64,000 nucleotides of DNA from Rebecca billardiae RCC1528. Its lineage: Eukaryota; Protista; Haptophyta. Below are positions 3,160 to 50,944 of the stretch, piece after piece. Where the stretch lies: NCBI GenBank assembly GCA_965240325.2, contig OZ251248.1:868001-932000 (forward strand), in the 5' to 3' direction. Numbering within the stretch: position 1 is the stretch's first letter; the number at the start of each line of letters is the position of its first letter. The translations under genes and the position numbers were made by a program. Below the pieces are notes generated by a model. The model was not told the DNA's origin, did not search any database, and saw only the letters and a program-made list of their open reading frames with translations.

Positions 3160-3257
<98 letters not shown>

Positions 3258-4317
3258 CGCACTGTCGGGGCGGACGAGCACGAGGGCCGCCGCTGCCGCG
3301 CCGCCTGCGCACGGCACGGGCAGCGGCGGCAGGCCGCGCTCCGCCGGCGCGCGCCCCGCCGCCACCGCCGCCGGCGGCGCCACCGCCGCCTCTGCCCACG
3401 ACGGCAGCGACGGGTCCGCGACCACAATCGTTCGGCGCCGCGCCGAGTCCTCCGCGCTACACACGCGCACGCGCGTCGGCGAAGCGTCCGAGCCATCGTC
3501 GGTGCCGTCGTCCGCGTCGGAGTCGGAGTCGGCCGAGGCGCCGTCGGGCTCGGAGGCCTCGTCGCCGCTGGGCCGCGCCGTCGCGGCGGGCGCGGGCTCA
3601 CTCGGCGCGCGCGCGCGCAGCATCGGCGCCGCGTTGCGCGGCGCGTGCGCGGCCGCGTGCAGCCACGCGCGCGCGCGCAGCCGCGCCCACGCGCCCTCGG
3701 CGCGCGCGGCGCACGCGCTCGCGGCGCCAAGCGCGGCGGCCGCGCGTCGGCGCTCCGCGCCCGCCAGGCTCAGCTCGGCCTCGCGCGTCTCCTCCGCAAG
3801 CCGAGACACCACCTCCGCCGCCGCCGCGCCGCCGTGCGCCTTCGCAAGCTCAAACTCGTCGCGGCGGCGCGAGCGCGCAAGCTCGGCCGCGCGCGCGCGC
3901 GAGCAGGTGTACGCGCGCGCGCCCAGCACGTGCGCGCGCAGCGGGCTGCGCGCCGCGGCGACGAGCGGCGCCCAGTGCGCCGCGGCGTCGAGGAAGGCCT
4001 CCGCCTCGGCGCCGCGCGCCGCCGACTCGCGCATAGCCGCCGCAACCGCGCGGCGCCGCGCGGCGCCGCGGCGCGCGGCCGGCGCCGGTGCCGGTGCCGG
4101 CGGCGGCGGCGGCGCCGGCGCAATCGGCAGCAGCCAGCTCGGCATTGGCGGCGGCGGCGGCGGCGGCGGCGCGGCGCGCTGCTGCGTGCTGTCCGCGCGC
4201 AGCCGGCCCCAGCTCGCGTCGGACGAGGCGCGCGAGCGCAGCGCGACCTCCTGGGGCTCACCCGCGCCGCCGCCGGCGCGCGCCGCCGGCTCGGCGGCGG
4301 CGGTCAAGCGCGGCACC

Positions 4318-4354
<37 letters not shown>

Positions 4355-5286
4355 TCGGATCGGCGGCGGCGGCGCCGTCGCCTGCCGCGCCGTCGCCGCC
4401 GCCGCTGCCGGCCGCGCCGCCGCCGAGCACCGCCACCAGCTCGGCGCCCAGCTGCGGCCAGTATGCGCGCAGCACGCGCTTGAGCGCGGGCACACTCAGC
4501 CGCAGCAGCGCCGCGCGCGCGCCTCGCACCGGCGGCAGCGGCGGGTGCGGCGGCGCGGGCGCGGCGTCGGCGCGTGGCCGGCCGCGCGCGCCGGCCGTGC
4601 CGCGCGCCGCCGCGTCCTCGCGCGCGGCCGCGGCGAGAGCGGCGGGCAGCCAGAGCACGGCCAGCAGCGCGAGCACTCGGCTGCGCTCAGCGTGCCACCA
4701 CGCGCCGCTCGCGCCCGCCTCCACACCGCCTTGCTGCAGGCCAGCGCCGCCGCCGTTGCCGCCGCCGCCTCCGCCGGTGCGCGTCGAGACTGCCGCCCCT
4801 GCGGCGAGCCCGCGCAGCTGCGCGCCGCCCTCCTGGTCGTGCCACAGCAGCTCGCACAGCCGGCGCTCAGCCGCAGCCTCGGCGAGCGCGGCGCGCGCCC
4901 TCGCCTCCGCGGGTTCGGGCGGCCGCCAGCCTTCATCCGCGCCGCGGCTTGTGGTAGCAGCGTCGTCGTCGTCGTCGTCGTCGTCGGCCGCCGCCGCGTC
5001 GGCGTCGGCGGCCGCGGCGGCGTCGATCTCGTCGAGCTGCTGACGAAACGCTGCGTCCGCGTCGGCGCCGGCGCCGTCCGCGTCGTCATCGCCGCCGCCG
5101 CCGCCGCCGCCCACGTCGCGGCCGAGCGGCGCGGCCGACACCGCCGCGCTCAGCTCGAGGTGCAGCAACGTGAAGAAGAGCGTCTTTGGCGGCTCGGCGG
5201 CGGGCGGCTCGGCGGCGGCCGCGTCGTCGGGCCGCGGCGGCGCGGCGTGCCGCGGCAGCGGCGGCAGCTCGCGCTCAGAGAGCAGC

Positions 5287-5323
<37 letters not shown>

Positions 5324-8300: not shown

Positions 8301-10660
8301 CGCGCGCCCGGCGTCGTCGTCGTCGGCGTCGGCGCCGCGCGGCGCGGCCGCGGCCGCGCGCAGCAGCGTAGGCAGCAGCAGGCTGTGCGGCGCGGCGGCG
8401 CGGCCGGCTCCGGCGGCGCCGCCGTCGTCTGCGTCGTCGTCGTCGGGGTCACCGAAGCTGAGGCAGGCGCCTCCCGCGGCCTCCTCCGCCGCGCGCGCCG
8501 CCGCGTCCACCGCGTCGCCACCGCGCCGCTCCCAGCCCTCGTCGCCGCCTTCGCCTTCGCCGTCGCCCCCAGCGGCGCCGGCCGCCGCCGCCGCGCCGTC
8601 CGCGTCCGCGCGCCTGTCCGATTCTGCCAGGTCGCACACACCCGGGGACCCTCCGCGCGCGCTCGGCGCGCGCAGCAGCACGCGCGCCAGCGCGTCGAGC
8701 AGCTCGGCCGCGCGCGCCGCGCGCAGCCGCGCGCGCTGCCCCGCGGCCGGCGCGAGCGCGCACGCCAGCGCGACGTCCAGCACCTCGGAGCCGCGCGCGC
8801 CCCGACTGAGCAGCGTCGACCAGGGCGGCGGCGGCAGCGCGCCCGGCCAGGGCGGCGCGGCGGGCTCGAGGGCACCGCCGCCGCCGAGCGCGCCGAAGCG
8901 CGCGCCTGGCGCGGCGGGCGAGGGCGCGAGCCCGCCGCCGCCGCCGCCGCCACCGTCCCCAGCCCACCGCTCGAGAGCACTCGACGCCACCGCGAGTGCG
9001 AGCGAGCTCGCAGCCGCGACCGCGCGGTGCGCCGCGTTTGGCGCGGGCGGCGCGCGCGGCGGCGCGGACAGCGCGGCGCCGCCCGCGCGCAGCAGCTCGC
9101 AGAGTAGCCGCGCGAGCAGCGCGCAGCTGCGCCCGTCCGCCTGCGCGCGCCGCCGCAGCAGCAGCGCGCACAGCGCGCGGCTCCGGAGCGGCGTGCACAA
9201 CTCGCGCACCGTGCGCGGCGCCGCGCGACCGTCAAGACTCAGCCGCAGCAGGCATCGGCACACGCGCGCGCACGGCGCGCCCGGCGCGCACGCCGCCGCA
9301 TACGCGAGGGCGGCCGCGAGCTCGCGCGAGGCCAGGGTGTCCGCGTCCGCCTCGGCGCCCACGCCGGCGTGCCCTGTGTCGGAGGCGTCGGCGCGCGCCG
9401 AGGCACCGTCCCTTCCGCCGCCGCCGCCGCCGCCGCCGTCACCGCCGCCGCCGCCGTCGTCACCGCCGCCGCTGCCGCCTTCGCTGCCTTCGCCTTCGCC
9501 GCCGCCGCCGCCAGTCGCGGCCGCGAAGAGAGCGTCAAGCGCCAGAGCGTCCAGAGGGACCCACGAGTTAGGGTTAGGGTTAGGGCCCGGTGGGCCCCAC
9601 GCGTCCGCGTCGAGCGGCGCAGGCGGCACCGCCGGCTCCGGCCGAGCAGTGGAGGCGGCGGCGGCGGCTGGCTCGAGCGGCGCGGCGCCCCGCTGTGCGC
9701 TGAGCACGGCACGGCGCACCCACGGTGGCGGTGGCGGCCATGGCTGCGTGTCGTCGCCATCGGCAGTGCCGCCGTCGGCCCTCGCTGCCGCGGCCGCCGC
9801 CGCCTCCGATGTGCTGAGCACAGCGCCGAACGCGCGTGCCACGCAGTCTGAGCGGCGCAGCAGCGCGCGCCGCCGGCGCGCGGGCGCGGCGCAATCGGCG
9901 CCGTCGCCGCCGCCGCCGCCGACGGCGCACCCGCCGCGCACACCGAGGGTGTCCGTGTGCTCGCGGGCGCGCGCGCCGCGGCCGGGCACGCGCAGCGCGC
10001 GCGCCAGCTCGGTCAGGTGGCGGGCGAGGTTGTCGACGCGAAGGCGGGCGGCGATGCGGTGTTCCGCTGCCAAGGCGGCGGCGGCGGCGGCGCCCGCCGC
10101 CGGCCCGCGCGCGGCGCCGCTACCCTCGCCGGCCACGGCGGCGGCCAGCGGCGGCTGCGCGCCCGCCGCGCCATGCCAGCCGCCGCCGCCTTCGGCCGCC
10201 GCAGCCGCACCCCAGCCACCGCCGCCGCCCCCGCCGGCCACCGTCGGCGCCGCCCACACATGCCATACCCGCGCGCTCAGCAGTATTCTCTCAACTAGCG
10301 CGAGCGCGAGCGTGGGCGCGGGGTCGCGCGGGTGAGCGGCGCCGACGGCGGCGGCGGGTCCGCCCCCCGCGCCGCCGCCGCCGCCGGCCGCCGCCGGCTC
10401 GGCGAGTGCCCCCAGCTCGGTGAGCAGGCCGAGCAGCTCCCAGAGCGCGCGCACGGTGCGCGCGCCCGCGCGCGCCTCGGGCCGCGTGCCGCCCGGCGGC
10501 GCCGGCGTTCCGAGCAGGGCCTCGGCCAGCAGCGCCGGGCCGCCGGCCGCGTGCAGCTCCGCGCGGTGCAGCGCCGAGTGGCGGAGCGTCTCGGCAAGCA
10601 GGCGCACGCACGCCGCGCAGTGCGCGTCCGCCGCGCTTGAGGGCTCAGGCGGCGGCACTG

Positions 10661-10692
<32 letters not shown>

Positions 10693-11166
10693 GCTGCGGC
10701 GCGCTCGGCGGGCGGCGGCGAGGGCGGTGCCGCCTCGATCGCCGCCGCGCGCGACAGCAGCTGCAACGCCCACAGCGGGCCGGGCAGCGCGTCGCGCACT
10801 GTGCCGCACCCGCCGTGCTCGCCGCCCGGCGCGCCGCCCATCACCACCGCGGTGCCGCGCCGCAGCAGCAGCGGCCGCGTCACCGCTCCAAAGCCATAGC
10901 ACCGCAGCGGCGCGTCGGCGGGCCCGGGCGGCGCGCATTCCGACGGCCGCCACGCGCCGCCGAGCGCGCGCGCGCGGCCGAGCGCGCGACCGGTTGGCCC
11001 CTCCACTGCGAGAGCGCGCGCCTCGGCCTCGGCGAGCGGCCGGTCGAAGCATGCCACGCCCGCGACTCGGACCGCCAGGCCAAGGGGCTCCGCGGAGGCG
11101 CTCGGGCGCTGCTCGGCGTCCGCCGCGCCGCCGCCGCCACCTGCGCAGCCGCCCCCGCCGCCGCCG

Positions 11167-11202
<36 letters not shown>

Positions 11203-11590
11203 AGGCGCCACTCGGACGTCGCGCCGCCGCCGCCGCGCTCGGCACCGCCGCCCGCCGCCGCGCCCTCGACGCCCCCAAGCACCACGCAGCGCACGCCGCC
11301 GTCAGCCGCGCCGCCGCCACCCCCGCCGCCGCCCGCCGCGCCCGCCGCCGCCGCCGCCAGCAACGCCGCGGACGGCGGCGCGGGCAGCGGCGGTGCCATC
11401 AGCTCGCCGTCGACGCGGAGAGACACAAGATCGCGAGCGGCCGCGCCGCCCAGCCCGAGCGCGGGCAGCCCCGCGCTCGCGCCCCGCTCCCAGCACAGCG
11501 TCACGCAGAGCCAGCGCCGCGTGCGCACGGCGCAGCCGGCGCGCGCGCCGGTTGGGCAAGGGGCGGCGGGCTCGGACGATGCGTCCGCGT

Positions 11591-11622
<32 letters not shown>

Positions 11623-13177
11623 GGCGGTACAGCGCGATCGGCGCCGACCCCACCGCCGGCGGTCGTGGCACTGGCCCCAGAGGACGGCGCCCCGAGCCCG
11701 CCCGCACCCGGCGTGCCCTCAGCCGCGCCCTCGGCCGAGCCCGCCGCCCGAGTCGAGCTCACACGCGCGCTCGAGCCGCCGCCGCCGCTAGCGCCGCCGC
11801 CGCAACCGCCCGCCGTCGCCGCTTCGGTGTGGGAGGCTGAGGCTGAGGCGCGCGCGGCGCCGAGGCGCCGGCCGACGGCGGACGCGAGCGAGCGCGCGGG
11901 GCGACGCGCCGTGAGCGCCGAGAGCGCCGACGCCGCCGCCGTCGAAACCGACGCCGCGAGCTGGCGCGGGCGCGAGCGCCGCGCCGGCCGCTGTTGCTCC
12001 CACGTGCAGAGTTGAAGGCGCGCGACGGCCGCGCCGCGCTCGCAGCTGAGGAGCAGCTCGAGGCCGCAGCCGCCATCGTGCGGCGGCGCGGGCGCGGCGG
12101 CGGCGCCGCCAGCGCCGCGCGCACCGCCCGGCTCGGCCGCGCCGCCGCCGGGCCCCGCCGCCGACGCACAGGCGGCCGCACCGCCGCTCGGCGCGCCGCC
12201 GCCGCCGCCGCCGCCCGCCGCCGCGCTCAGTCGGAACACGCAGCAGCGCGCGGCCGCCGCCCCGTCCGCACCACCCGCCGCGCCGTGGGCGTGCCCCGGC
12301 GGCGGCGCGTCACCAGGCCGTCGCCGCGCCGCCGCGGCCGCCTCCGCGGCGGCCGGGGCCCCGTCCGGACAGTCCGGGCAGTCCGGGCAGTCCGGGCAGT
12401 CCGGGGCCTCGAGCCAGAGCCACAGGACCACAGTCCAGCCGGATCGCGCGCCGAGCGCGGCCAGCCGCGCGGCGGGGAGCGCGCAGAAGGGCTCGAGGCT
12501 CGGCGCGGGCGCGCCCCGCGCCAGCCCGACGACGCCCGCGCCCACGCGCAGCGCGAAGTACGCGCGCCCGTACGCGCAGCCGTCGGGCGCGGCGGCGGCG
12601 CACGCGGCCAGCGCCTCGAGCAGCGCGAGTGCGCGCGCCGCGGCGCGCGGGCGCACGAGCAGCGCGCTCGGCGCGTCGGGCGGGCGCAGGCCGAGCGCGC
12701 GATCGCGCTCCTCCGCGGCCAGCCGCTCGTGCGCGCCCGTGTCGTCCGCCAGCCACACGGCGAGCGCTCGGAGCGCGGGGCGCAGCGAGCCGGGCCGATC
12801 GCCGCGCGCGCTCGCGCGCGCGGCGAGCGCGCCGAGCACGGGCGCGGCGGGTGAGTCGTGCGCGAGGAGGTCGGGGAGCGCGTCGAGCAGCACGGCCACC
12901 GAGCGCACCTCGCCCGCCGCGCCCTCGCGCGACGGCGGCGCGCGCAGCGCGCGCGCGAGCCGTCGGGCATGCGCCGAGCGCGCGCCGGCCTGTCGCGCGG
13001 CGCGGCGGCGCGGTGGGCGTGGCGCGCGTGAGCGGCGGGGGTTCCGAGCGCAGGGCTTGGCGCGGGGCGCGTGCCGCGGCGCGGCGTTTGGCGCGCGCGC
13101 ACCGCGCGCAGCCGCTCCGCCTCGGCGGCGAGCAGGAGCAGGCCGCCGTCCTCCTCCGCGCGAGAATGAGCGTCCAT
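1..13177 (-). CDS. Giant BEACH-domain protein (neurobeachin/LRBA/LYST family; ConA-like, PH and BEACH domains), 3' end beyond the window
   Basis: Predicted exons on the minus strand: 13177-13103 (MDAHSRAEEDGG...), 12989-1873, 1668-1523, 1117-<1. The GTGCGC..CAG introns (13102-12990, 1872-1669, 1522-1118) join in frame. Spliced translation gives BEACH motifs: ERWQRRELSNYEYLLELNAHAGRSYLDLNQYPVMPW, FHYGSHYS, LLR|LEPYT...GRFDLPDRQF, DVKELIPEFY|G, DVELPRWA, RALESEAVSASLHGWIDLVFGHKQSG, NLFYYLTY, FGQTPARL. A PH-like segment (GTLTVT..VRF, RRRYQLADCGLEVF) precedes BEACH, and ConA-like strands (GWTVVLWLWL, RWLCVTLCW, LRVDGEL) lie near the N-terminus. The start codon and possible extra introns in the 11-kb exon are less certain. 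Confidence 0.9.
3163..3258 (-). repeat. Coding hexamer microsatellite (GCGTCC/GCGTCG)n encoding a poly-(Ala-Asp) tract, followed by a poly-Glu run
   Basis: Read directly; translates as DADADADA...EEEEEE inside the BEACH ORF. Confidence 0.85.
9568..9585 (+). repeat. Interstitial telomeric repeat (TTAGGG)3
   Basis: ttagggttagggttaggg, read as PNPNPN on the minus strand. Confidence 0.8.
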
Positions 13178-13349
13178 GGCGCCACAACTTTCACTTGGCC
13201 GCCGCGCGGGACGTCCGGACACTGAAGCTTCCCAGTCTAGCGCGCCCAGCGGCAGCCGCCTCTCGGTCCGCGCGCGAGGGCGGCATCCTGCGTGCCTCGC
13301 GGCCGACGCGCGCGCCGGCTGCAGCGCGGGCGCGCGGGCGCGCGGGGGC
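13178..13349. promoter_or_regulatory. Putative bidirectional promoter between the BEACH and AP-4 mu genes
   Basis: Only 172 bp separate the two predicted divergent ATGs (13177 minus, 13350 plus). Confidence 0.5.
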
Positions 13350-14720
13350 ATGACCGCGCCCGTCTCGCAGCTGTTCATCCTCGCGCCCAACGGCCACGCC
13401 ATCGTGTACAAGGACTACCGCGGCGAGCTGCCGAAGGAAACTTCCGAGACGTTCTTCCACGAGCTGGTCGAGAAGGGCGCGGGCTCGTGCCCGCCGGTGT
13501 TCGTGGTGGACGGCGTGTCGTACATCGCGGTGAAGCAGTCGGGGCTGCACTTCCTCTGCACCACCGTCGACAACGTCTGCCCCTCGCTCGTCATCTCGCT
13601 GCTCACCCAGCTCACCAAGGTGTGCAAGGACTACTTGGGCGTGCTGAACGAAGAAGCTCTGCGGAAGAACTTCACGCTGGTGTACGAGCTGGTGGACGAG
13701 GTGATCGACTACGGGTACCCGCAGAACGCGGCGACGACGGACCTGCAGGCCTACCTCTTCAACAAGCCCGTCCCCGTCGAGCCGCCCAGCGTCTCCAGCG
13801 TCCTCCCCTCGTTCAAGGCGAACCCGAAGACGATGGCGTCGGCCGCGGCGCACAAGTCGGTGGTGCTACAGGCGCAGGGCGGGATGGGCGGGTGGCGCTC
13901 GGGCGGGGGCAACGAGATCTTCATCGACCTCGTCGACCGCATCTCCGCGCTGCTCACCGCCGAGGGCCAGGTCCGGACCTTCTCCGTCGACGGCTGCATC
14001 CAGATGAAGTCCTTCTTAAAAGGCTCTCCGCAGGTCCACCTCGCCCTGAACGAGGACCTGGTGATCGCGTCGGGCGGCGCGGGCGGGCGCGCGGCGGGCG
14101 GGGCGTACGGCGCGGTGCAGCTCGACGACGTCAACTTCCACGAGTGCGTCGTGCTCGACCGCTTCGACTCGGAGAAGATCCTCACGCTCGCGCCGCCGTC
14201 GGGCGAATTCGTCGTGATGAATTTCCGGATCGGCACTCTCCGCTCCGAGCGGCAGTTGCCGTTCCGGCTGTGGCCGACGGTGCACCAGCTCTCCGAGTTC
14301 AAGACGGAGCTGCAGGTGACGGTGAAGGCGGACTTCCCGGACAAGCTGCACGCGGTCAACGTGCGCATCACCTTCAACGTGCCCAAGTCCGCCAGCGCCG
14401 CGTCCGTCTCGCTGCCGGCCAACGCGTCGCGCGCCGTGCAGACCGCTACGTACACCGAGTCGACCAAGGCCGTGGAGTGGCTCGTGAAGAAGTGGCCCGG
14501 CGGCTCGGCGCTCTCGCTCTCGACGAAGATGACGGTGCCCGCGGGCTGCGACGCCAAGAAGGAGATGGGCCCGATCTCGATGGCCTTCGAGATCCCGTGC
14601 TATAACGTGTCGCAGCTCGCAGTGCGCCACCTCAACATCGTCGAGCGCGACAAGTCGTACAAGCCGCACCGGTGGGTGCGCTGCCTCACGCACGCCTCGT
14701 CGTACTGCTGCCGCGTGTGA
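13350..14720 (+). CDS. AP4M1: Adaptor protein complex AP-4 medium (mu) subunit, intronless, 456 aa
   Basis: Longin N-terminus MTAPVSQLFILAPNGHAIVYKDYRGE; YLGVLNEEALRKNFTLVYELVDEVIDYGYPQ; mu homology domain NEIFIDLVD, IQMKSFLKGSP..LALNEDL, LDDVNFHECV, PPSGEFVVMNFR, GPISMAFEIP.YNVSQL, PHRWVR. The LALNEDL, LDD.NFHE and GPISM.F.IP motifs fit mu4 best. The ORF-track start at 13176 is an upstream in-frame extension. Confidence 0.92.
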   Translation: MTAPVSQLFILAPNGHAIVYKDYRGELPKETSETFFHELVEKGAGSCPPVFVVDGVSYIAVKQSGLHFLCTTVDNVCPSLVISLLTQLTKVCKDYLGVLNEEALRKNFTLVYELVDEVIDYGYPQNAATTDLQAYLFNKPVPVEPPSVSSVLPSFKANPKTMASAAAHKSVVLQAQGGMGGWRSGGGNEIFIDLVDRISALLTAEGQVRTFSVDGCIQMKSFLKGSPQVHLALNEDLVIASGGAGGRAAGGAYGAVQLDDVNFHECVVLDRFDSEKILTLAPPSGEFVVMNFRIGTLRSERQLPFRLWPTVHQLSEFKTELQVTVKADFPDKLHAVNVRITFNVPKSASAASVSLPANASRAVQTATYTESTKAVEWLVKKWPGGSALSLSTKMTVPAGCDAKKEMGPISMAFEIPCYNVSQLAVRHLNIVERDKSYKPHRWVRCLTHASSYCCRV

Positions 14721-14785: not shown

Positions 14786-17700
14786 TCCGCTCGGCGGCCG
14801 CGGGCGCCGACGGCCGGCGGCGGCGGGCGCTAACTGACAGTGACACTCGCCGACGGACGACGCCGGGGCGCCGCGGTCTTGTCCTACTAGCTGCCAGTAG
14901 GCGCTGATGCACCTGCCGTCCCATCGTCCGCGTGCTCAGAACGCGCAGCGTGCTGCCGTCGCCGTCGACGGCGCGTGAGTCAGCGGCTGCCGCTCGGCTG
15001 ACACTGTCACTGACGGCTTTCGGCGGGGCATGCATCACTTTTGTAGCTCGCGCGTGAACTTTATATGGGTTGGCGCTGCGCGTCATTCGTCAACTTGGGC
15101 TGGAAACCTGTTTCTGAAACGCATGATGGTACGCCGGGCCGGCAGCCCGAGCTCGGAATTCCGACGCTGCCAACGGCGCCACAGGGGCGCAGCGGCGGGG
15201 CTGACGACGCGCGCGCGTGTGCACGTCTGACCACGGAGTGCGCGCTGCAATGACTGGCCCGTCCGCAGCACCACGCCCCGCGCTGTGAGTGAGAGTGTGG
15301 CCCGCGCCCAAGCGAGAACGCGGGCCGGGCGGCACTCCGCCGACCTCGCCGGCCGCCGACCAGCCCGCGGCCGCCTGCTGCAGCTCGTGGAACACGCAGT
15401 CGCGCGCTCGCGCGTGGAGGGCGGACCTGCGCGTATGCGCCCGCCGGGCTTGCCGCTTCATCCGCTGGCACCGCAGTGCAGGTCGAGCCGTCCGCCGCCC
15501 ACCGAGCCGGCGCCACGCCTCGCGCTCGTGCTCGAGCTGAGGCGGCGGCGTGTCGCCCGAGCCGGCGGGGTCGCGCGCGTGCGCGTGGTGGGCAGCCTCG
15601 CGCGTGCGCCCGCCGCGCGCCCCGCGTCTCTCGCTTGGCGCCGCACGCGAGCCGCTCGTCGCGCGACCGAACGAGACGTCAACGCAAGGGCGACCCTTGG
15701 AATGGCGTGGGCTCTCGCCTGTCGTCCTTCACGGGACGTCGTCGATGCGAGGCCGCGCGAGGTTGCTCCGATGCCAGCCAGGTTTGGCGCTCTGCAGTGG
15801 CGGATGCCAGCTAACCGCGCGCGCGTCGCGCTCCTTCTGGCGATCCGGTGTTTACGATAGGCGGATGCAGGGGTTGCCTGGGGCCGCCAGTCGCCACGGG
15901 GGGGGGCAGGGCGGCGAGGCAGCGCCCGCCCGGCAGCACATCGCCCCCCCCGTGGACGCTGACTCAAGCCGCACCCACCCCAGCGCGGCGATCCCACGCC
16001 AGGGAGGGCGGGCGGGAGGCGGAGGAGCGCCGCTGGCTGTCCGTGAGTGTGCCGGCGCCGCCGCGGCCTGCCGCCCGGGGGCCCCGGGCCCGGGCGGGGC
16101 CGCTGTGCTCAGGCGTCGGCCGGGGCAGGGTGCGCCGGGGGGCAGTCGCGGCGGAAGCGGTCGGCTGCACGACGTGGGCTGCCCTGACCGGCCCCGAAGG
16201 TGCGCCTGTCACGCCGAGGGTCGGCCCTCCTGCAGGTACGCTCACTTTCCGCTTGGTACCCGCGCCGCAAAGGCGAGCTGCTTCCGACTCACATCTCGTC
16301 ACCGTGCGGTCACTCCGGCGATGCCGCTGCGAGCGCCGAGCCCGCGTCCGGCCAGGTATACGCCCACCTAGCGGGGAGGGGCACGGGCGGCGGCGGAGCA
16401 GCGACGCGGCAGTCATAACGCGATAACCGCCGCGGACTGCCAAACCCACCACTCCCGTCGCGTCGGCCATCGCCCCATAACCGCGCGCGCGTCGCGCTCC
16501 TTCTGGCGATCCGGTGTTTACGATAGGCGGATGCAGGGGTTGCCTGGGGCCGCCAGTCGCCACGGGGGGGGGCAGGGCGGCGAGGCAGCGCCCGCCCAAA
16601 GAGGCGCAGCGCCAGGCGCCACGCCGGCGTGGCCGGCGTCGGCCGGCGCGGCCGAGGCCAGGCCCGGCCCCGACCCCCAGAGGCGCAGCGCCCTGCCCAC
16701 CACCACGCCGCACGCCGCCGGTGTGAGGCCGCGGAGCGGCGGACTGGGTGCCCCCCCCCCCTCCCCCCCAGCGCTCAGCCCCTGCCAGAGGTCGCCGAGA
16801 GCCCGCAGCGACCGGCGGACCACAGGACCACTGGCGTAACCCGCCCGTCGTCGCGCGCCGGCACAGGCCAGGCGAAGCGCTGCAGGTGACCCGCAGGCCA
16901 CGCCGTCCACTTGCCCGACGAAACCGCCCAGCAGCACGCGCGCACCGCCGCCGCCGCCGCCGGCCGGCGAGAGCGCATGCGCCCGAGCCGTCGCGGAACA
17001 CACCCGAGCCGACATGAGGCGCAGGTATCGACGTCGGCTTGCCGACAACGTCGTCAACCACGCGCCTGCAGACCGCACGAGCGCCCGTGAAAGCGCGCCG
17101 AAAAGGGGCGTGCGAGGTGACGCGCACGGTGCGCGAATGGTGATGGCCGTGCGGCGCACGAATGACGATCGGTGCGCGCGCACGATGAGCGGTGCACGCG
17201 CGGGCGGATCGGAGCGCGCGCATGATAAACGGCGCATGATACTCGGCGCGCGCGCATGACGGCGCGCGCGCATGATGATCGGCGCTGGTCGGTGCGCGCG
17301 CATGATGATCGTCACGCGATGATCGGCGCGCGCGCATGACCATGCGCGCGCGTGACGAATTCGCCGCAACGGCTCGCGCGAGAGGCACAAGGCGATTGAC
17401 GATGAACGCGACCACGTTCGAGCGCTCGAGCGAAGCAGGAGGTGATGAGTGAGGAAGATGGCACAGGAATGGGAGAGGAACGCGTGGCGCGTGGCGGGAA
17501 GGGCCAGGCACGCTCGGCGTGAGGAAAGGAACGCGCGTAGAAACGGAACGGAACGGAAAGCAGCGGTTCGAGCGATAGACAGGAGGTGATTGACGACGAT
17601 GAGCGCGTGCGCGCTCGAGCGACGCAGAAGGTGACGAGCGAGGAAGACCAAGGCCAGGTGAAAGCGCCGCAGGTGGCCAGCGGGCCACGTCGCTTTTCGC

Positions 17701-18199
17701 GCCCGAAAACGCCCAGCAGCGCGCGCGCCCCGCTGCAGTGGCAGCCGACCGGCGAGAGCTGCATCCGCCAGAGCCGCCACGCGGCGCAGGTATCAACGCC
17801 GGCCCGCCGACAACGTCGTCCCCGACACCCCGGCCACAGACACCACGTACACCCATGTAAGCGCGCCGAAAGGTGCGCGCGAGGATGGCGCACTCGGCAC
17901 CCGAATGATGATGATGGTTGCGCGGAGCACGAATGATGATCGGCGCGCGCGGGTATCAACGCCAGCCCGCCGACGACGTCGTCCCCCACGCCCCGGCCAC
18001 AGACACCACGTACGCCCATGTAAGCGCGCCGAAAGGTGTGTGCGATGATGGCACGCTCGGCACCCGGATGATGATGCGATGGTTACGCTGAGCACGAAGT
18101 GATGATCGGCGCGCGCACATGATGATGATCGGCGCGCGCGCATGAGAAGACAGGTGCGAGTGACGCGCGGAGAAGATGCGCGCGGAGACGATAGGCGCG

Positions 18200-18812
18200 G
18201 AGGACATAGGCGCAAGTAACGCGCGGAGGAGATAGGCGCAAGTAACGCGCGGAGAAGATAGGCGCAAGTAACGCGCGGAGAAGATATAGTAGGCGCAAGT
18301 AACGCGCGGAGACAGGCGCAAGTAACGCGCGGAGAAGATAGGCGCAAGTAAACGCGCGGAGAAGATATAGTAGGCGCAAGTAACGCGCGGAGACAGGCGC
18401 AAGTAACGCGCGGAGAAGATAGGCGCAAGTAACGCGCGGAGAAGATATAGTAGGCGCAAGTAACGCGCGGAGACAGGCGCAAGTAACGCGCGGAGAAGAT
18501 AGGCGCAAGTAAACGCGCGGAGAAGATATAGTAGGCGCAAGTAACGCGCGGAGACAGGCGCAAGTAACGCGCGGAGAAGTAGATAGTATAGGCGCAAGTA
18601 ACGCGCGGAGGAGGTATAGGCGCAAGTGACGCGCGGAGACAGGCGCAAGTAACGCGTGGGGAAGTAGATATAGTAGGCGCAAGTAACGCGCGGAGAAGTA
18701 GATAGGCGCAAGTGACGCGCGGAGACAGGCGCAAGTAACGCGCGGAGAAGTAGATAGTAGGCGCAAGTAACGCGCGGAGATGAGATAGGCGCAAGTGACG
18801 CGCGGAGAAGAT
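18200..18812 (+). repeat. Minisatellite with core AGGCGCAAGTAACGCGCGGAG and short variable purine-rich linkers
   Basis: More than 20 copies of the core, separated by ac, aagat, aagatatagt, aagtagatagt and similar linkers. Confidence 0.9.
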
Positions 18813-18861
18813 AGGGTGCGCACACGATGATCGGCGCATGATGATCGGCGCGCGCGCGAGG

Positions 18862-18940
18862 GATAGACAGATAGACAGATAGACAGATAGACAGATAGAC
18901 AGATAGACAGATAGATAGACAGATAGATAGACAGATAGAC
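18862..18940 (+). repeat. (GATA/GACA)n microsatellite
   Basis: gatagacagatagacagatag... read directly. Confidence 0.9.
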
Positions 18941-21211
18941 GCGCGAGTGAGCGACGGCGAGCTGTAGAGAAGGGTGAGTCGTGCGGCGGCGAGTGGCGGC
19001 GGCGTGCTTGCAGCGCGGCAGCGGCGTGCGGCGAGCGCGAACACGCGGAGCGCGCGCGGCTCCGCTGTTGCGCCCCGAGGGGCCCGCGCCGAAGAAGCGC
19101 GCTCGCTCGAGCGGGGGGCAGATCGAAGGTGATGAAGCGCGCGGTTCCGCTCAAGCGAAGTAGAAGGTGATGAGCGACGAGTGTGCCCGACGGACGACAG
19201 CGCAACGACACCTCACGCGCCGCCCCGCCGGCCGCCCAACAGATGGCCGAGAACGGGACGCCGAAGTAGCATGTGTGCGCTCACTGCCCGCGCCGCCGAC
19301 ATGCGCTCCAGCTCGGACGAAGGGCAGAAGGTGTTGTTGAGCGCGCCCCCGCGAGCGCGCAGCAGCTGGTGAGGAGCGTGTTGTTGAGTACGCCCCCGCG
19401 AGCGCGCAGCAGCTGGTGAGGAGCGTGGAGCGTGCCCGACACACGCCCGCTGGCGCCGCCCCGCCGTGCGCCCAGCCGCCGGACGCTGCCGATGGACGCA
19501 GAAGCAGCATGGATGCGCACGAGTCTCGTCCAGCGCCAAAATGCGCTCGCGCGCGAGCGAGGCAGACAGCGCCGAGCGCGCCCACGCTCGAGCGAAGCAG
19601 GTGGAGATGAGCGAGGAGCGCGCACGACGGACGGCAGCGCACCGGCACCTCACTTACCACCCCGATGTGCGTCCCCGATGGGCGCCCGGCCACCGGACGC
19701 CTCAGAAGGACACCCAGCACAAGCGTGGTCGCGCACGAGCGGATGAGAGAAGCAGAAGGCGCTGAGCGTTCCCCTCGAGTAAAGCAGTGGGCCATGAGGA
19801 GGAGGGAGCACGACGGACGGCAGTGCCCAGCACCTCGCGCTCCGCCTCGCAGTGCGCACGACCGTCGGATGCCGCCGCAGAAGGACGCCGAAGCAGCATC
19901 GTGAGAGTTCGAGCGTGATGCACGCGCACCACGCCAGGGGGGGACAACGAGGAACGGGGAGCGAAGGAGGCGGAGGAGCGCCGCTGGCTGTCCGTGAGTG
20001 TGCCGGCGCCGCCGCGGCCTGCCGCCCGGGGGCCCCGGGCCCGGGCGGGGCCGCTGTGCTCAGGCGTCGGCCGGGGCAGGGTGCGCCGGGGGGCAGTCGC
20101 GGCGGAAGCGGTCGGCTGCACGACGTGGGCTGCCCTGACCGGCCCCGAAGGTGCGCCTGTCACGCCGAGGGTCGGCCCTCCTGCAGGTACGCTCACTTTC
20201 CGCTTGGTACCCGCGCCGCAAAGGCGAGCTGCTTCCGACTCACATCTCGTCACCGTGCGGTCACTCCGGCGATGCCGCTGCGAGCGCCGAGCCCGCGTCC
20301 GGCCAGGTATACGCCCACCTAGCGGGGAGGGGCACGGGCGGCGGCGGAGCAGCGACGCGGCAGTCATAACGCGATAACCGCCGCGGACTGCCAAACCCAC
20401 CACTCCCGTCGCGTCGGCCATCGCCCCGAAACTGGGGCTTTTGGCCCAGTTTGCGATGGCACAGTGGGGGGCTTCGCGGGTCAGTAAACTGGGGAAAAGC
20501 CTCAGTTTCAGATGGCACGCGCCCACTGCGGCCGTGCCATCGCAAACTGGGCCGAATCGCCCAGTTTGCGTGTGCACGGGGACGCACTGCGGCCGGCTGC
20601 AACTTGGCTCAGCATGGGGCAACAGGGCAGCTGTCCACAGCCCAGGCGGGGCGTCACCGCCTGCGGGCCGCCGGTGGGCAGGGCCGACGGCGTCGCAGAG
20701 CTCATGCGTGGGAGCAGCGCGTTGAGAAGGCAACCAAGGTCGAGAAGGAGGGGGCAAGGCCGGCAAGCAGCAGGGGCCACCGGTACGTTCGTACATGCCT
20801 CCACACCGGTGCACATCACCCTTGCTCGCGGCCGTGACCTGTGCTGGCACTCACCTCATCATCGCCCACCATGCAGTGGCGGCCGAGCTAAGGCGAATAC
20901 TCACAGGCACCGAACACGCATCGGCGGTGCCCACTGGTGCTGGCATGCTGTCCTCTACTTGCTGTCGGACAGCAAGCGGAGACGGCACCGCCGCAGCTGC
21001 GAGCGGGTGAGGTGCTGCTCTGCTCAGCGAGGCTGAGAGGCTGAGCACGGATCACGGATGGTGAGCCCTGGTCTCTCAACGCATCCAGGAGAGCAGTTGG
21101 TGCATAACTGTGCTCAGGCGTGCAGGACCAACCATCCGGTGCTGCTTCAAGCACCCGCGCCAACAGCGGCGGTACTCAACTCCACGCTGCTCATGCGGCC
21201 ACACAGCTGCA

Positions 21212-23960
21212 GGGATGGTGCCACGGCGGGCGGCGGCGGTCGACGCAGCTGTCAGCTCGGCGGTGCGCGCCCGAGGGGCCTAGGCGACGAACGCGCCGAG
21301 CGCGGTGTGGCTGCTCGCTTCGCCCAGCGCGCGCGAGCCGCTGCCATCGGGTGCCGCTGCGCCCGCGCCCAGCGCGGGCAGCAGCAGCTGTACTCAACTC
21401 CTCGCCGAGTGCGGCGGCAGCAGCAGGGATGGTGCCACGGCGGGCTGCGGCAGTCGCTGCAGCTGGCAGCTCGGTGGTGCGCGCCCGAGGAGCCTGGGCG
21501 CTGGGCGCACCGAGCGCGGTGACGCTGCTCGCCTCGCCCAGCGCGCTGGAGCCGCTGCCACCGGGCGCCGCTGCGCCCGCGCCCAGCCGGGGCAGCAGCA
21601 GCTGCGCTCGACTCCGCGCCGAGTGCGGCGGCAGCAGCGGGGATGGTGCCACGGCGGGCGGCGGCGGTCGCTGGAGCTGGCAGCTCGGTGGTGCCTGCCC
21701 GATGGGCCTGGGCGCTGGGCGCACCGAGCGCGGTGACGCTGCTCGCCTCGCCCAACGCGCTCGAGCCGCTGCCATCGGGCGCTGCGCTGCCCGCGCCCAG
21801 CTTGGGCAGCAGCAGCTGCGCTCGACTCCGCGCCGAGTGCGGCGGCAGCAGCAGGGATGGTGCCACGGCGGGCTGCGGCGGTCGCTGGAGCTGGCAGCTC
21901 GGTGGTGTGCGCCCGAGGAGCCTGGGCGCTGGGCGCACCGAGCGCGGTGACGCTGCTCGCCTCGCCCAGCGCGCTGGAGCCGCTGCCACCGGGCGCCGCT
22001 GCGCCCGCGCCCAGCCGGGGCAGCAGCAGCTGCGCTCGACTCCGCGCCGCGTGCGGCGGCAGCAGCAGGGATGGTGCCACGGCGGGCGGCGGCGGTCGCT
22101 GCAGCTGAAAGCTCGTTAGTGCCTGCCCGATGGGCCTGGGCGCTGGGCGCACCGAGCGCGGTGACGCTGCTCGCCTCGCCCAGCGCGCTCGAGCCGCTGT
22201 CACCAGGCGCTGCTGCGCCCGCGCCCAGCCGGGGCAGCTGCAGCTGCGCTCGACTCCGCGCCGAGTGCGGCGGCAGCAGCAGGGATGGTGCCACGGCGGG
22301 CGGTGGCAGTCGCTGGAGCTGGCAGCTCGGTGGTGCGCGCCCGAGGAGCCTGGGCGCTGGGCGCACCGAGCGCGGTGACGCTGCTCGCCTCGCCCAACGC
22401 GCTGGAGCCGCTGCCATCGGGCGCTGCGCTGCCCGCGCCCAGCTTGGGCAGCAGCAGCTGTGCTCGACTCCGCGCCGAGTGCGGCGGTAGCAGCAGGGAT
22501 GGTGCCACGGCGGGCGGCGGCGGTCGCTGGAGCTGGCAGCTCGGTGGTGCGCGCCCGAGGAGCCTGGGCGCTGGGCGCACCGAGCGCGGTGACGCTGCTC
22601 GCCTCGCCCAGCGCGCTCGAGCCGCTGCCACCGGGCGCTGCTGCGCCCGCGCCCAGCTTGGGCAGCAGCAGCTGCGCTCGACTCCGCGCCGCGTGCGGCG
22701 GCAGCAGCAGGGATGGTGCCACGGCGGGCGGCGGCGGTCGCTGCAGCTGAAAGCTCGTTGGTGCCTGCCCGATGGGCCTGGGCGCTGGGCGCACCGAGCG
22801 CGGTGACGCTGCTCGCCTCGCCCAACGCGCTGGAGCCGCTGCCATCGGGCGCTGCGCTGCCCGCGCCCAGCTTGGGCAGCAGCAGCTGCGCTCGACTCCG
22901 CGCCGAGTGCGGCGGCAGCAGCAGGGATGGTGACACGGCGGGCGGCGGCGGTCGCTGGAGCTGGCAGCTCGGTGGTGCGCGCCCGAGGAGCCTGGGCGCT
23001 GGGCGCACCGAGCGCGGTGACGCTGCTCGCCTCGCCCAACGCGCTGGAGCCGCTGCCATCGGGCGCTGCTGCGCCCGCGCCCAGCCGGGGCAGCAGCAGC
23101 TGCGCTCGACTCCGCGCCGAGTGCGGCGGCAGCAGCAGGGATGGTGACACGGCGGGCTGTGGCAGTCGCTGGAGCTGGCAGCTCGGTGGTGCGCGCCCGA
23201 GGAGCCTGGGCGCTGGGCGCACCGAGCGCGGTGACGCTGCTCGCCTCGCCCAGCGCGCTCGAGCCGCTGCCATCGGGCGCTGCTGCGCCCGCGCCCAGCT
23301 TGGGCAGCAGCAGCTGCGCTCGACTCCGCGCCGAGTGCGGCGGCAGCAGCGGGGATGGTGCCACGGCGGGCTGTGGCAGGTGCTGGAGCTGGCAGCTCGG
23401 TGGTGCGCGCCCGAGGAGCCTGGGCGCTGGGCGCACCGAGCGCGGTGACGCTGCTCGCCTCGCCCAGCGCGCTCGAGCCGCTGCCATCGGGCGCTGCTGC
23501 GCCCGCGCCCAGCCGGGGCAGCAGCAGCTGCGCTCAACTCCGCGCCGCGTGCGGCAGCAGCAGCAGGGATGGTGCCACGTCTGGCGGCGGCGGTCGCTGG
23601 AGCTCAAAGCCCGGCGGTGCGCGCCCGAGGGGGCTAGGCATTTGGCGCACCGAGCGCGGTGACGCCGCTCGCTTCCCGCAGCGCGCTGGAGCCGCTGCCA
23701 TCCGATGCTGCTGCGCCTGCGCCCCGCTTGGGCAGCAGCAGCTGCGCTCGACTTCCCACCGCGTGCGGCGGCAGCAGCGGGGATGGTGCCACGGCGGCCG
23801 GCGGCGGTCGCTGGAGCTGACACCCCGGCGGTTCGTGCTTCAGGGGCCTGGGCGGTGGACGCACTGAGCGCGGTGACGCTGCTCGCCTCGCCCACCGCGC
23901 TCGAGCCGCTGCCATCTGATGCTGCTGCACCGCCCGGGCAGCTGCAGACTCTGCGCTCGA
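21212..23960 (+). repeat. 214-bp tandem satellite array, ~13 units (left foldback arm)
   Basis: gggatggtgccacggcggg... recurs every 214 bp (matching ORF starts 21643, 21857, 22071, 22285). The last 2-3 units are more diverged. Confidence 0.92.
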
Positions 23961-24859
23961 CTCCACGCCGCGTGCCGTGTCGTGGCAGGCAGCAGCAGCA
24001 GCAGGCTGGTGATTAACTGCTGCTGCTCAGCAGATTACTGCGACTGCTGCTCGGTCGCTGCGTATGAAGTAGATGAGCGAGTCGCTTGTGCCGGGCCGCA
24101 GGCAGCAGCCCAGCCGTGCCGATATGCCTCGGATGGCGTAGTCAGTGGTCGTACTCGGGGCGGAGAGTAGTGCCGTGCCCGTAGGTGATCCGGACTCGCG
24201 AGTCGCGGAGTGCCGAGCACAGCCCGGCCGGTATTGGCGGATATGGACGACTGCTATATCGTCGTCGCGCGATACATCGGCATCATCAGCATCATCATCA
24301 GCATCGAATACCGTAGTCTGCTCCGAATATGACGGCGCGAATTTGAGCGCAGCTAAGAATTTATAATAAGTATAGTAGCGCAGATGACGCCAGACGAATT
24401 CATCACTCTGCTCCGATGACCGAGCGGCGCGCATTATATATATATATATATATAGCTGCTGCGGCTGCGCATGCAGTGCCATGAGCCCTCTATACCAGTT
24501 GTCGGTCTGCTGCATATATATATAGTACATTATGACCAACTCCTCGGAGATCGGGTCCGCGTAACCGGATCGCCCGAATATCCCCGATCGGACGGCGGGA
24601 CGCGACTCCGGAGTCGGAGACCGGACGGTGATGACACAGTACTCAGTAGCCGCTCGGCTCGCGGCTCTGACCGGGCTGATGCCCCGCCCCCGCAATAACC
24701 GACCGCGCGCGGTCGTTTACCGGCGGGTTAACGCGGCGGCCGGCCGCGCTGCGAGGCTGCGACTGCTGACAGCGAGTCAGCGGGTCACTCATCTAGTTCA
24801 TCATACGCATCGACCGAGCAGTCGCGACGGTGCTGACGATCTGAGCTGCTGCAGCTGCT

Positions 24860-27166
24860 CCGGCTGGGCGCAGACAGCGCAGCGCCGGGTGGCAGCGACT
24901 CACCAGCGCGCTGGGCGAGGCGAGCAGCGTCACCGCGCTCGGTGCGCCCAGCGCCCAGGCTCCTCGGGCGCGCACCACCGAGCTGCCAGCTGCAGCGACC
25001 GCCGCCGCCCGCCGTGTCACCATCCCTGCTGCTGCCGCCGCACTCGGCGCGGAGTCGAGCGCAGCTGCTGCTGCCCAAGCTGGGCGCGGGCGCAGCAGCG
25101 CCCGATGGCAGCGGCTCGAGCGCGCTGGGCGAGGCGAGCAGCGTCACCGCGCTCGGTGCGCCCAGCGCCCAGGCTCCTCGGGCGCGCACCACCGAGCTGC
25201 CAGCTCCAGCGACTGCCACAGCCCGCCGTGGCACCATCCCTGCTGCTGCCGCCGCACTCGGCGCGGAGTCGAGCGCAGCTGCTGCTGCCCCGGCTGGGCG
25301 CGGGCGCAGCGGCGCCCGGTGGCAGCGGCTCGAGCGCGCTGGGCGAGGCGAGCAGCGTCACCGCGCTCGGTGCGCCCAGCGCCCAGGCCCATCGGGCAGG
25401 CACCAACGAGCTTTCAGCTGCAGCGACCCCCGCCGCCCGCCGTGGCACCATCCCTGCTGCTGCCGCCGCACGCGGCGCGGAGTCGAGCGCAGCTGCTGCT
25501 GCCCCGGCTGGGCGCGGGCGCAGCAGCGCCCGATGGCAGCGGCTCCAGCGCGCTGGGCGAGGCGAGCAGCGTCACCGCGCTCGGTGCGCCCAGCGCCCAG
25601 GCTCCTCGGGCGCGCACCACCGAGCTGCCAGCTCCAGCGACCGCCGCCGCCCGCCGTGGCACCATCCCTGCTGCTGCCGCCGCACTCGGCGCGGAGTCGA
25701 GCGCAGCTGCTGCTGCCCAAGCTGGGCGCGGGCGCAGCCGCGCCCGGTGGCAGCGGCTCGAGCGCGCTGGGCGAGGCGAGCAGCGTCACCGCGCTCGGTG
25801 CGCCCAGCGCCCAGGCTCCTCGGGCGCACACCACCGAGCTGCCAGCTCCAGCGACCGCCGCCGCCCGCCGTGGCACCATCCCTGCTGCTGCCGCCGCACT
25901 CGGCGCGGAGTCGAGCGCAGCTGCTGCTGCCCAAGCTGGGCGCGGGCAGCGCAGCGCCCGATGGCAGCGGCTCCAGCGCGTTGGGCGAGGCGAGCAGCGT
26001 CACCGCGCTCGGTGCGCCCAGCGCCCAGGCTCCTCGGGCGCGCACCACCGAGCTGCCAGCTCCAGCGACCGCCGCCGCCCGCCGTGTCACCATCCCTGCT
26101 GCTGCCGCCGCACTCGGCGCGGAGTCGAGCGCAGCTGCTGCTGCCCAAGCTGGGCGCGGGCAGCGCAGCGCCCGATGGCAGCGGCTCCAGCGCGTTGGGC
26201 GAGGCGAGCAGCGTCACCGCGCTCGGTGCGCCCAGCGCCCAGGCTCCACGGGCGCGCACCACCGAGCTGCCAGCTCCAGCGACCGCCGCCGCCCGCCGTG
26301 TCACCATCCCTGCTGCTGCCGCCGCACTCGGCGCGGAGTCGAGCGCAGCTGCTGCTGCCCAAGCTGGGCGCGGGCGCAGCGGCGCCCGGTGGCAGCGGCT
26401 CCAGCGCGTTGGGCGAGGCGAGCAGCGTCACCGCGCTCGGTGCGCCCAGCGCCCAGGCTCCTCGGGCGCACACCACCGAGCTGCCAGCTCCAGCGACCGC
26501 CGCCGCCCGCCGTGGCACCATCCCCGCTGCTGCCGCCGCACTCGGCGCGGAGTCGAGCGCAGCTGCTGCTGCCCCGGCTGGGCGCGGGCGCAGCAGCGCC
26601 CGATGGCAGCGGCTCCAGCGCGTTGGGCGAGGCGAGCAGCGTCACCGCGCTCGGTGCGCCCAGCGCCCAGGCTCCTCGGGCGCGCACCACCGAGCTGCCA
26701 GCTCCAGCGACCGCCGCCGCCCGCCGTGTCACCATCCCTGCTGCTGCCGCCGCACTCGGCGCGGAGTCGAGCGCAGCTGCTGCTGCCCAAGCTGGGCGCG
26801 GGCGCAGCGGCGCCCGGTGGCAGCGGCTCCAGCGCGTTGGGCGAGGCGAGCAGCGTCACCGCGCTCGGTGCGCCCAGCGCCCAGGCTCCTCGGGCGCACA
26901 CCACCGAGCTGCCAGCTCCAGCGACCGCCGCCGCCCGCCGTGGCACCATCCCCGCTGCTGCCGCCGCACTCGGCGCGGAGTCGAGCGCAGCTGCTGCTGC
27001 CCCGGCTGGGCGCGGGCGCAGCAGCGCCCGATGGCAGCGGCTCGCGCGCGCTGGGCGAAGCGAGCAGCCACACCGCGCTCGGCGCGTTCGTCGCCTAGGC
27101 CCCTCGGGCGCGCACCGCCGAGCTGACAGCTGCGTCGACCGCCGCCGCCCGCCGTGGCACCATCCC
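24860..27166 (-). repeat. 214-bp tandem satellite array, ~11 units, inverted (right foldback arm)
   Basis: Reverse complement of the left array; the same peptides appear on the opposite strand in the ORF track. Confidence 0.92.
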
Positions 27167-29262
27167 TGCAGCTGTGTGGCCGCATGAGCAGCGTGGAGTT
27201 GAGTACCGCCGCTGTTGGCGCGGGTGCTTGAAGCAGCACCGGATGGTTGGTCCTGCACGCCTGAGCACAGTTATGCACCAACTGCTCTCCTGGATGCGTT
27301 GAGAGACCAGGGCTCACCATCCGTGATCCGTGCTCAGCCTCTCAGCCTCGCTGAGCAGAGCAGCACCTCACCCGCTCGCAGCTGCGGCGGTGCCGTCTCC
27401 GCTTGCTGTCCGACAGCAAGTAGAGGACAGCATGCCAGCACCAGTGGGCACCGCCGATGCGTGTTCGGTGCCTGTGAGTATTCGCCTTAGCTCGGCCGCC
27501 ACTGCATGGTGGGCGATGATGAGGTGAGTGCCAGCACAGGTCACGGCCGCGAGCAAGGGTGATGTGCACCGGTGTGGAGGCATGTACGAACGTACCGGTG
27601 GCCCCTGCTGCTTGCCGGCCTTGCCCCCTCCTTCTCGACCTTGGTTGCCTTCTCAACGCGCCGCTCCCACGCATGAGCTCTGCGACGCCGTCGGCCCTGC
27701 CCACCGGCGGCCCGCAGGCGGTGACGCCCCGCCTGTGCTGTGGACAGCTGCCCCATGCTGAGCCAAGTTGCAGCCGGCCGCAGTGCGTCCCCGTGCACAC
27801 GCAAACTGGGCGATTCGGCCCAGTTTGCGATGGCACGGCCGCAGTGGGCGCGTGCCATCTGAAACTGAGGCTTTTCCCCAGTTTACTGACCCGCGAAGCC
27901 CCCCACTGTGCCATCGCAAACTGGGCCAAAAGCCCCAGTTTCAGCTGGCATCCGCCACTGCAGAGCGCCAGACCTTATTGCCGATGCTCGTAGTCCAATG
28001 CAAGATGATACCCGCGTGCCAATATCAGCGCGCCCCTTTGCTCGTGAAATGTCTAGCGAGAAAGTGGCGGATCGTGTGAATGTGAAGTGTGAACTCGCGA
28101 CACGACGAATGGGCCGATGCGATTCGCGCGAATGTGAGTACGCAAAGCGCCGAACGACGAGCGGCTTTTGACCGAACGACGAGCGGCTTTTGTCCTATCG
28201 AGCGCGTAAGCGGGTACGCGAATTGCGCTTATGTGACCCGGTGGGCCGGTGGTGAGTGGGGCGTCAAATATGGGTTGGCGCTGCGCGTCAACTTGGGCTG
28301 GAAACCTGTTTCTGAAACGCATGATGGCACGCCGGGCCGGTAGCCCGAGCTCGGAATTCCGACGCTGCCAACGGCGCCACAGGGGCGCAGCGGCGGGGCT
28401 GACGACGCGCGCGCGTGTGCACGTCTGACCATGGAGTGCGCGCTGCAATGACTGGCCCGTCCGCAGCACCACGCCCCGCGCTGTGAGTGAGAGTGTGGCC
28501 CGCGCCCAAGCGAGAACGCGGGCCGGGCGACACTCCGCCGACCTCGCCGGCCGCCGACCAGCCCGCGGCCGCCTGCTGCAGCTCGTGGAACACGCAGTCG
28601 CGCGCTCGCGCGTGGAGGGCGGACCTGCGCGTATGCGCCCGCCGGGCTTGCCGCTTCATCCGCTGGCACCGCAGTGCAGGTCGAGCCGTCCGCCGCCCAC
28701 CGAGCCGGCGCCACGCCTCGCGCTCGTGCTCGAGCTGAGGCGGCGGCGTGTCGCCCGAGCCGGCGGGGTCGCGCGCGTGCGCGTGGTGGGCAGCCTCGCG
28801 CGTGCGCCCGCCGCGCGCCCCGCGTCTCTCGCTTGGCGCCGCACGCGAGCCGCTCGTCGCGCGACCGAACGAGACGTCAACGCAAGGGCGACCCTTGGAA
28901 TGGCGTGGGCTCTCCGCCTTGTCGTCCTTCACGGGACGTCGTCGATGCGAGGCCGCGCGAGGTTGCTCCGATGCTCGTAGTCCAATGCAAGATGATACCC
29001 GCGTGCCACTATCAGCGCGCCCCTTTGCTCGTGAATTGTCTAGAGAAAGTGACGGATCGTGTGAATGTGAAGTGTGAACTCGCGACACGACGAATGCGCC
29101 GATGCGATTCGCGCGAATGTGAGTACGCAAAGCGCCGAACGACGAGCGGTGTTTTACCGAACGACGAGCGGTTTTTGTTCTATCGGGCGCCTAGGCGGGT
29201 ACGCGAAATGCGCTTATGTGACCGACAAACAGACAGACAGACGGGTTAGGGGGGCGTCAAAA

Positions 29263-50814: not shown

Positions 50815-50880
<66 letters not shown>

Positions 50881-50913
50881 CGGGAGCGGCGGCGGCGGCG
50901 GCGGAGCTCTTGG

Positions 50914-50944
<31 letters not shown>

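Follow-up and report, generated by a model that had tools for sequence, protein, structure and literature searches.

The locus studied here raises a simple question: how did a 12.2-kb span with inverted arms and satellite DNA come to lie inside a repeated sequence of the alga Rebecca billardiae RCC1528, and what kind of enzyme could have put them there? Our window, the whole stretch of DNA that was analysed, spans 64,000 nucleotides (contig OZ251248.1, here C32:868001-932000) of a very GC-rich assembly of 72 Mb in 41 contigs. Positions 15775-27980 of the window are a single insertion, and this insertion is very probably a young, non-autonomous copy of a foldback-type cut-and-paste DNA transposon. 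Its parts, together with the target-site duplication (TSD) that flanks it, are the following:

15768-15774, no strand: left TSD, CCGATGC, 7 bp, a perfect match to the right TSD
15775-15812, plus strand: left 38-bp terminal inverted repeat, a CAGCC-type end that recurs in all copies
20428-21203, plus strand: left unique arm, 776 bp, with five subterminal CCCAGTTT motifs in alternating orientation
21204-23931, plus strand: left 214-bp satellite array, 12.7 units
23932-24847, no strand: central non-repeated region, 916 bp, GC 0.60, including (TA)n and without a recognisable gene
24848-27174, minus strand: right 214-bp satellite array, 10.9 units, opposed to the left array
27175-27942, minus strand: right unique arm, 768 bp, with local palindromes in its subterminal 180 bp
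27943-27980, minus strand: right 38-bp terminal inverted repeat, CAATA-type end
27981-27987, no strand: right TSD, CCGATGC

The two ends start with CA, finish with TG and match at 34 of 38 positions by our count, the four mismatches falling at terminal positions 3, 4, 5 and 10. The alignment of the unique arms shows two substitutions and a single gap of 8 bp. We counted 10 occurrences of CCCAGTTT in the window against 0.27 expected, all of them within about 140 bp of an arm end, and a 16-mer that contains it is found eight times in the arms, four in each, against 0.39 expected for the window. Five motif copies of 16-18 bp are set as local palindromes in each arm, and the subterminal 180 bp of the right arm give a z-score of -7.2 for single-strand folding. 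A preliminary description of this stretch had reported the duplicated CCGATGC, the 38-bp CA..TG termini, near-identical arms with one 8-bp indel, repeated subterminal motifs and opposed satellite arrays of unequal copy number, and all of these were recovered, with the two substitutions to be added. It had also spoken of a giant foldback of 12.2 kb: the single insertion stands, the size does not, for 4.6 kb of the span are a nested foreign element. Once its 4,615 bp are subtracted from 15775-27980, the foldback proper measures 7.6 kb, of which inverted arms of 3.5 and 3.1 kb, with the tandem repeats inside them, make up most. Such arms, a TSD whose length is constant from one insertion to the next, and little or no coding capacity in most copies are the structural marks of the foldback class, and all three are seen here.

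The insertion itself can be demonstrated from its surroundings, where three stretches of the same repeat are found:

15063-15774, plus strand: left portion of the dispersed-repeat copy that was interrupted, 98% identity to 28268-28974
27981-28238, plus strand: right part of the interrupted copy, 94% identity to 28968-29223
28268-29223, plus strand: adjacent intact copy, with the empty site CCGATGC at 28968-28974

The interrupted target belongs to a family of dispersed repeats, each about 965 bp long, which begin with ATATGGGTTGG and finish with TTATGTGACC; at least 40 copies exist in the genome, at 86-98% identity, and the two of the window lie 29 bp apart. A single, uninterrupted CCGATGC is present in six copies, the adjacent one and five on other contigs. 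Because the insertion is flanked by a perfect TSD and the empty site is kept in six paralogs, we consider it shown. The empty site next door had already been pointed out in the preliminary description and is confirmed, with the correction that the sequence bearing it is a member of a dispersed family and not simply a local paralog.

The element has many relatives. Our survey was seeded with the right end, and relatives were sought with a terminal 16-mer search tolerating one mismatch; the copy counts given here, including those for the dispersed repeat and the nested family, are lower bounds. At least 10 further complete copies were found, among them copies on C15, C16 (two), C17, C19 (two), C22, C34 and C36, with fragments besides. 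The tabulation of TSDs that had been proposed for such a search gives a perfect 7-bp duplication in 11/11 complete copies examined, each at a different site, and no target-site consensus is evident among these 11 insertion sites. Every complete copy has two distinguishable end types, and the orientation of the centre is fixed relative to them. Uninterrupted copies measure 6.7-9.8 kb. By the sequence of their unique arms the copies can be sorted into two subfamilies, one of seven that contains the window copy and whose members are 0-0.4% apart, the other of three that lie 1.2-2.2% away. The centres of the six other members of the first subfamily are 97-98.6% identical to ours, that of the C34 copy being split by a 2.2-kb insertion. 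The CAGCC-side arm of the window copy is identical to that of four other copies and the opposite arm to that of one. Since its arms lie only 0.0-0.3% from the arms of other copies, sequence comparison indicates that the window foldback is young, as had been claimed for it, and has moved very recently.

The satellite behaves differently from the arms. Near-identical copies hold 4-14 units per arm, which means that array length evolves much more quickly than the unique parts do. The foldback does carry a satellite, as described before, and the same 214-bp unit is present at dozens of other loci. Comparison of the satellite with the arm, as its possible origin, gave a weak 62-bp match at 74%. A ten-unit array in one orientation lies at C15:2004588-2006727, with no inverted partner, family arm or terminus within 5-8 kb; it is possibly a solo array or the cargo of another element. 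In the older subfamily (the first C16 copy, C17 and C15), 2/3 copies show a difference of only 0-0.3% between their own two arms. As arms of the same element are closer to each other than to those of other copies (1.2-2.2%), this pattern suggests that they undergo exchange within one element.

Two sister families have the same outer 16 bases and the same left/right asymmetry. One is represented by at least 16 pairs of the terminal 16-mer, 5.6-7.3 kb apart; the other by six pairs, 10-15 kb apart, whose positions coincide with satellite matches of 87-89% identity. A 14-kb sister copy at C15:1773864-1787908 has the TSD CAATGAC and arms with 12 and 11 satellite units. A smaller kind of foldback was also seen: inside the left terminal repeat of the 13.3-kb copy at C16:635161-648467 (TSD GCGGCAC) sits a mini-foldback (CAAGGG...CCCTTG, 1.1 kb) whose inverted ends measure 405 bp and which has a 7-bp TSD of its own, GCTCTGC.

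Between the left end and the left arm of the window copy lies the foreign sequence mentioned above, which is organised as a split direct repeat:

15813-20427, minus strand: nested gene-less split-direct-repeat element, 4,615 bp, between left end and arm
15813-15931: A1, direct repeat, 119 bp
16015-16476: B1, direct repeat, 462 bp
16477-16478: AT linker
16479-16597: A2, 119 bp, followed by a tandem-repeat-rich body
19966-20427: B2, 462 bp

In nine other foldback copies the end is joined straight to the arm, and the preservation of that junction identifies 15813-20427 as an insertion. Its internal repeats (119 bp twice, 462 bp twice) are 100% identical, and the 462-bp repeat forms at least 20 further pairs in the genome, about 3.95 kb apart and with about 100% identity. 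Given how widespread and how uniform these pairs are, the nested element represents a separate, very young family. Its architecture makes it probably a non-autonomous tyrosine-recombinase retroelement of the Ngaro/PAT-like kind. Such elements likewise show direct repeats in the order A-B-A-body-B and make no target duplication, and none was found at the junctions of the nested element, whose internal B-A junction mirrors the joined termini. The copy differs from them in that a spacer of 83 bp separates the first A from B and that it gave no match to a reverse transcriptase or tyrosine recombinase. Because its open frames have no Pfam match at all, it would be at most a non-autonomous derivative.

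We picture the history of the locus in the following manner. An element of canonical layout (a 38-bp end, a unique arm of about 770 bp, 4-14 satellite units, a non-coding centre of 0.9 kb and a mirrored arm) landed in a copy of the 965-bp dispersed repeat, duplicating 7 bp of the target. A transposase supplied in trans would bind the terminal 38 bp and the pairs of subterminal motifs, excise the element and cut the target with a 7-bp stagger. The satellite would be passive cargo, its unit number shifting by slippage or unequal exchange. The two ends are likely to differ in function, since three families have preserved the same differences between left and right. Before or after the landing, the 4.6-kb split-direct-repeat element struck the junction of left end and arm exactly.

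If the enzyme acts in trans, its gene should be sought elsewhere in the genome. Pfam searches of the long open frames of the window foldback, including its centre, gave no match, in agreement with the earlier judgement that the element is non-autonomous, which is how we read it from its sequence too. The coding search covered the foldback copies that were read; the 15.4-kb copy C11:61726-77142 and the bulk of the sister families stand outside this set. The C15, C17 and C34 copies have longer centres, whose open frames were considered together with those of the nested element and set aside, as all look like GC-driven random frames, and the 14-kb sister copy has no clean open frame. A handful of transposase-family Pfam profiles were run genome-wide (PF21787, PF05485, PF05699 and MULE, for Mutator-like element, among them). 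This search gave exactly one P-type match (PF21787), a single-copy open frame of 1,317 codons at C21:1532843-1536796, minus strand. The frame aligns to the motifs PHLxK..RN and D..EH.FG of the fly P transposase, its catalytic residues D820, D933 and E1219 stand in invariant alignment columns, and its neighbours in a protein atlas are all P/THAP9 clusters. A word-based protein search with the catalytic half returned no match; a full HMMER search with the protein returned 645 relatives, the closest of which have PF21787 together with PF21788, the GTP-binding insertion domain, and stem from transcriptomes of marine protists, one of them a pelagophyte. No match to the C21 protein was obtained by tblastn in the window or in any fetched foldback copy. 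For hAT elements, the sole PF05699 match was an 89-codon frame with a stop. We discarded the hAT superfamily, for which an 8-bp duplication and a transposase with a hAT dimerisation domain are expected: here the TSD is 7 bp and the PF05699 frame is broken.

Several explanations compete with our reading of the locus, and they concern either the unit that was inserted or the enzyme that moved it. Assembly errors can yield palindromic structures, so one may ask whether there is a mobile element at all and not a local inverted duplication or an artefact. Still, 11 copies of identical architecture on nine contigs, each with a 7-bp duplication specific to its site, and an empty site kept in six paralogs leave this idea with practically no credibility. 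A more serious proposal is that the unit transposed here was the whole 12.2-kb composite, the nested part not being a later arrival. Indeed, the foldback at C16:635161-648467 holds the same nested element (C16:636315-641804), inserted at precisely the nucleotide where it sits in the window and facing the same way. However, that copy belongs to the other subfamily, its arms are about 2% from those of the window although the two nested elements are just 0.36% apart, the left junctions are 2 bp off, and the close relatives of the window foldback all do without a nested element. Also, nine other copies of the nested family show a preference for a T|GAA-like target, which the window site fits, and the position shared by the two foldbacks suggests that a target of this type is preferred at the end-arm junction; with this preference and just eight TGAAA sites per foldback, independent hits become plausible. 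We favour two independent hits, one in the window and one in C16, on the strength of these sequence differences, and regard the composite as a serious but somewhat doubtful account.

The identity of the enzyme is a harder matter. We think that it is most likely of P type, at about even odds. The preliminary description had placed the element among the Galileo-type members of the P superfamily. The part of this claim that concerns the TSD stands, since 7 bp is found family-wide and lies within the 7-8 bp of that superfamily; the part that concerns the gene does not, and we do not assign the element to the superfamily, since among the copies read none with the same ends encodes a P-type transposase, an enzyme with an RNase H-like fold and a GTP-binding insertion. 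A number of observations speak against a P-type foldback moved by cutting and pasting. None of the copies with these ends that were read encodes a transposase, be it of the THAP/P type or the hAT type that had been called for. Within 16 kb, the flanks of the sole PF21787 gene hold neither matching ends nor the subterminal motif, and no inverted repeat there is bordered by a duplication. The THAP profile (PF05485) matched neither the genome nor the N-terminus of the C21 protein, although the same search was silent in all control genomes. No satellite unit contains the subterminal motif within 3 mismatches, so there is no hint of extra binding sites like those of Galileo, and a genome pattern search for excision footprints (at least 8 bases of each end within 30 bp), which the staggered cleavage of the P superfamily would leave, found none. 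The genome also has MULE-type transposase genes, finally: the two good matches to MULE domains lie in long open frames. As for the ends of the C21 gene, we had searched for them as the family termini, as the mini-foldback termini and, more loosely, as inverted repeats of whatever sequence that run CA...TG and are flanked by 7 duplicated bp, and rejected what came up as GC-rich chance matches.

In favour of the P type, the gene can be linked to the elements by the 7-bp TSD, the CA...TG ends and its being the only P-type gene in a genome with very recent movement. A stronger version, that the stationary C21 gene drives in trans all foldbacks with 7-bp TSDs (those of the window family and of both sister families as well as the 1.1-kb mini-foldbacks), we offer tentatively and consider unlikely. 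If it were true, the conserved left/right asymmetry would mark the two distinct recognition sites of the enzyme. A Mutator-like transposase, the enzyme to which most foldbacks (FB, Tetris) have been ascribed by proposal, has in its favour the two frames just mentioned, at C23:328244 (1,051 codons) and at C10:1918801. Against it, the TSD is 7 bp in all 11 copies, outside the 8-10 bp expected of Mutator-type foldbacks and reported for Tetris (PMC4079207), and among the terminal 16-mer matches listed none is near either MULE gene; we find this option improbable. The enzyme could also belong to another or an undescribed superfamily, or the autonomous element could have been lost or left unassembled, with the C21 gene unrelated and possibly domesticated. 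The failure to find a transposase gene with these ends fits that account, as do the single, end-less copy of the C21 gene, which is what a domesticated gene looks like, and the handful of Pfam families that the search covered. What stands against it is that copies only 0-0.4% apart imply very recent activity, and a working enzyme should then persist. Few superfamilies, moreover, are known to produce 7-bp duplications. We see this as a real possibility, short of the P-type reading in its general form.

The surroundings of the foldback deserve a few words. It lies about 1 kb downstream of the stop codon of a gene for the medium (mu) subunit of an adaptor complex. The neighbouring frames are that of a large BEACH-domain protein (1698-13187, minus strand) and that of the mu subunit itself (13176-14717, plus strand). 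Further on, a 12-bp (four-codon) repeat in degenerate form fills positions 37422-47575, some 10 kb with a GC skew near -0.45 to -0.5, inside a 6,382-codon open frame (36482-55630) that runs on into a polycystin-like region. A second gene-less element lies at 55647-62757, with long direct repeats of 228 bp and of 181 bp, each present twice; its interior is composed of short repeats that belong to many families.

The design of a foldback that carries a satellite was already known from flies, and the window element is an instance of it in an alga. What is new here is an empty site documented in multiple paralogs, a nested split-repeat element that reuses one site, the structure of the subfamilies and a named candidate transposase gene. 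Our results extend satellite-carrying foldbacks, known mainly from Drosophila, to recent activity in a haptophyte-type alga; in the library of papers that was searched, none combines "haptophyte" and "foldback". Near-identical copies with very different satellite lengths form a natural series from which the rate of tandem-repeat expansion inside a mobile element could be estimated, and ectopic recombination could occur at the long inverted arms. Also, the single intact P-type gene on C21 offers a concrete and testable candidate for the enzyme.

How the element compares with known systems can be judged from three of them, all in flies. The P element of Drosophila makes an 8-bp duplication. It has 31-bp ends and an internal transposase gene bearing a THAP domain, features that are not seen in the foldback, and it has an RNase H-like catalytic core in common with the C21 candidate enzyme. 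Its CA...TG ends, the unlike organisation of its 5' and 3' sides and the binding sites that lie subterminally, some tens of bp in from each tip, are all reminiscent of our element (as cited in PMC3688188). Tetris/DAIBAM of Drosophila virilis is closer in shape, being a foldback without genes whose arms contain tandemly repeated units of about 220 bp and whose middle domain is variable, with a repeat that is also found outside complete elements and without a known autonomous partner (PMC4079207). It differs in its 8-10-bp duplications, against 7 bp here, in its tentative assignment to Mutator (PMC4079207), and in having three structurally complete copies known, against at least 11 clean copies in our case.

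The closest likeness in detail is with Galileo, a Drosophila member of the P superfamily that duplicates 7 bp of its target and whose long ends have repeats inside them (PMC3573991, PMC3688188). Both share the length of the TSD, tandem repeats of about 210 bp within very long inverted ends and in unequal number at the two ends, a short terminal segment (about 40 bp in Galileo) conserved between families while the longer arms are family-specific, and a large number of copies that keep both ends but have no transposase gene (PMC3573991, PMC3688188). Nearly complete copies of Galileo encode a THAP-containing P-type transposase, whereas no coding copy was read here, and its tandem repeats hold secondary THAP binding sites, while our satellite is devoid of the subterminal motif. 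Finally, Galileo has 0-3 repeat units per end and lives in insects; the foldbacks described here have 4-14 per arm and live in an alga.

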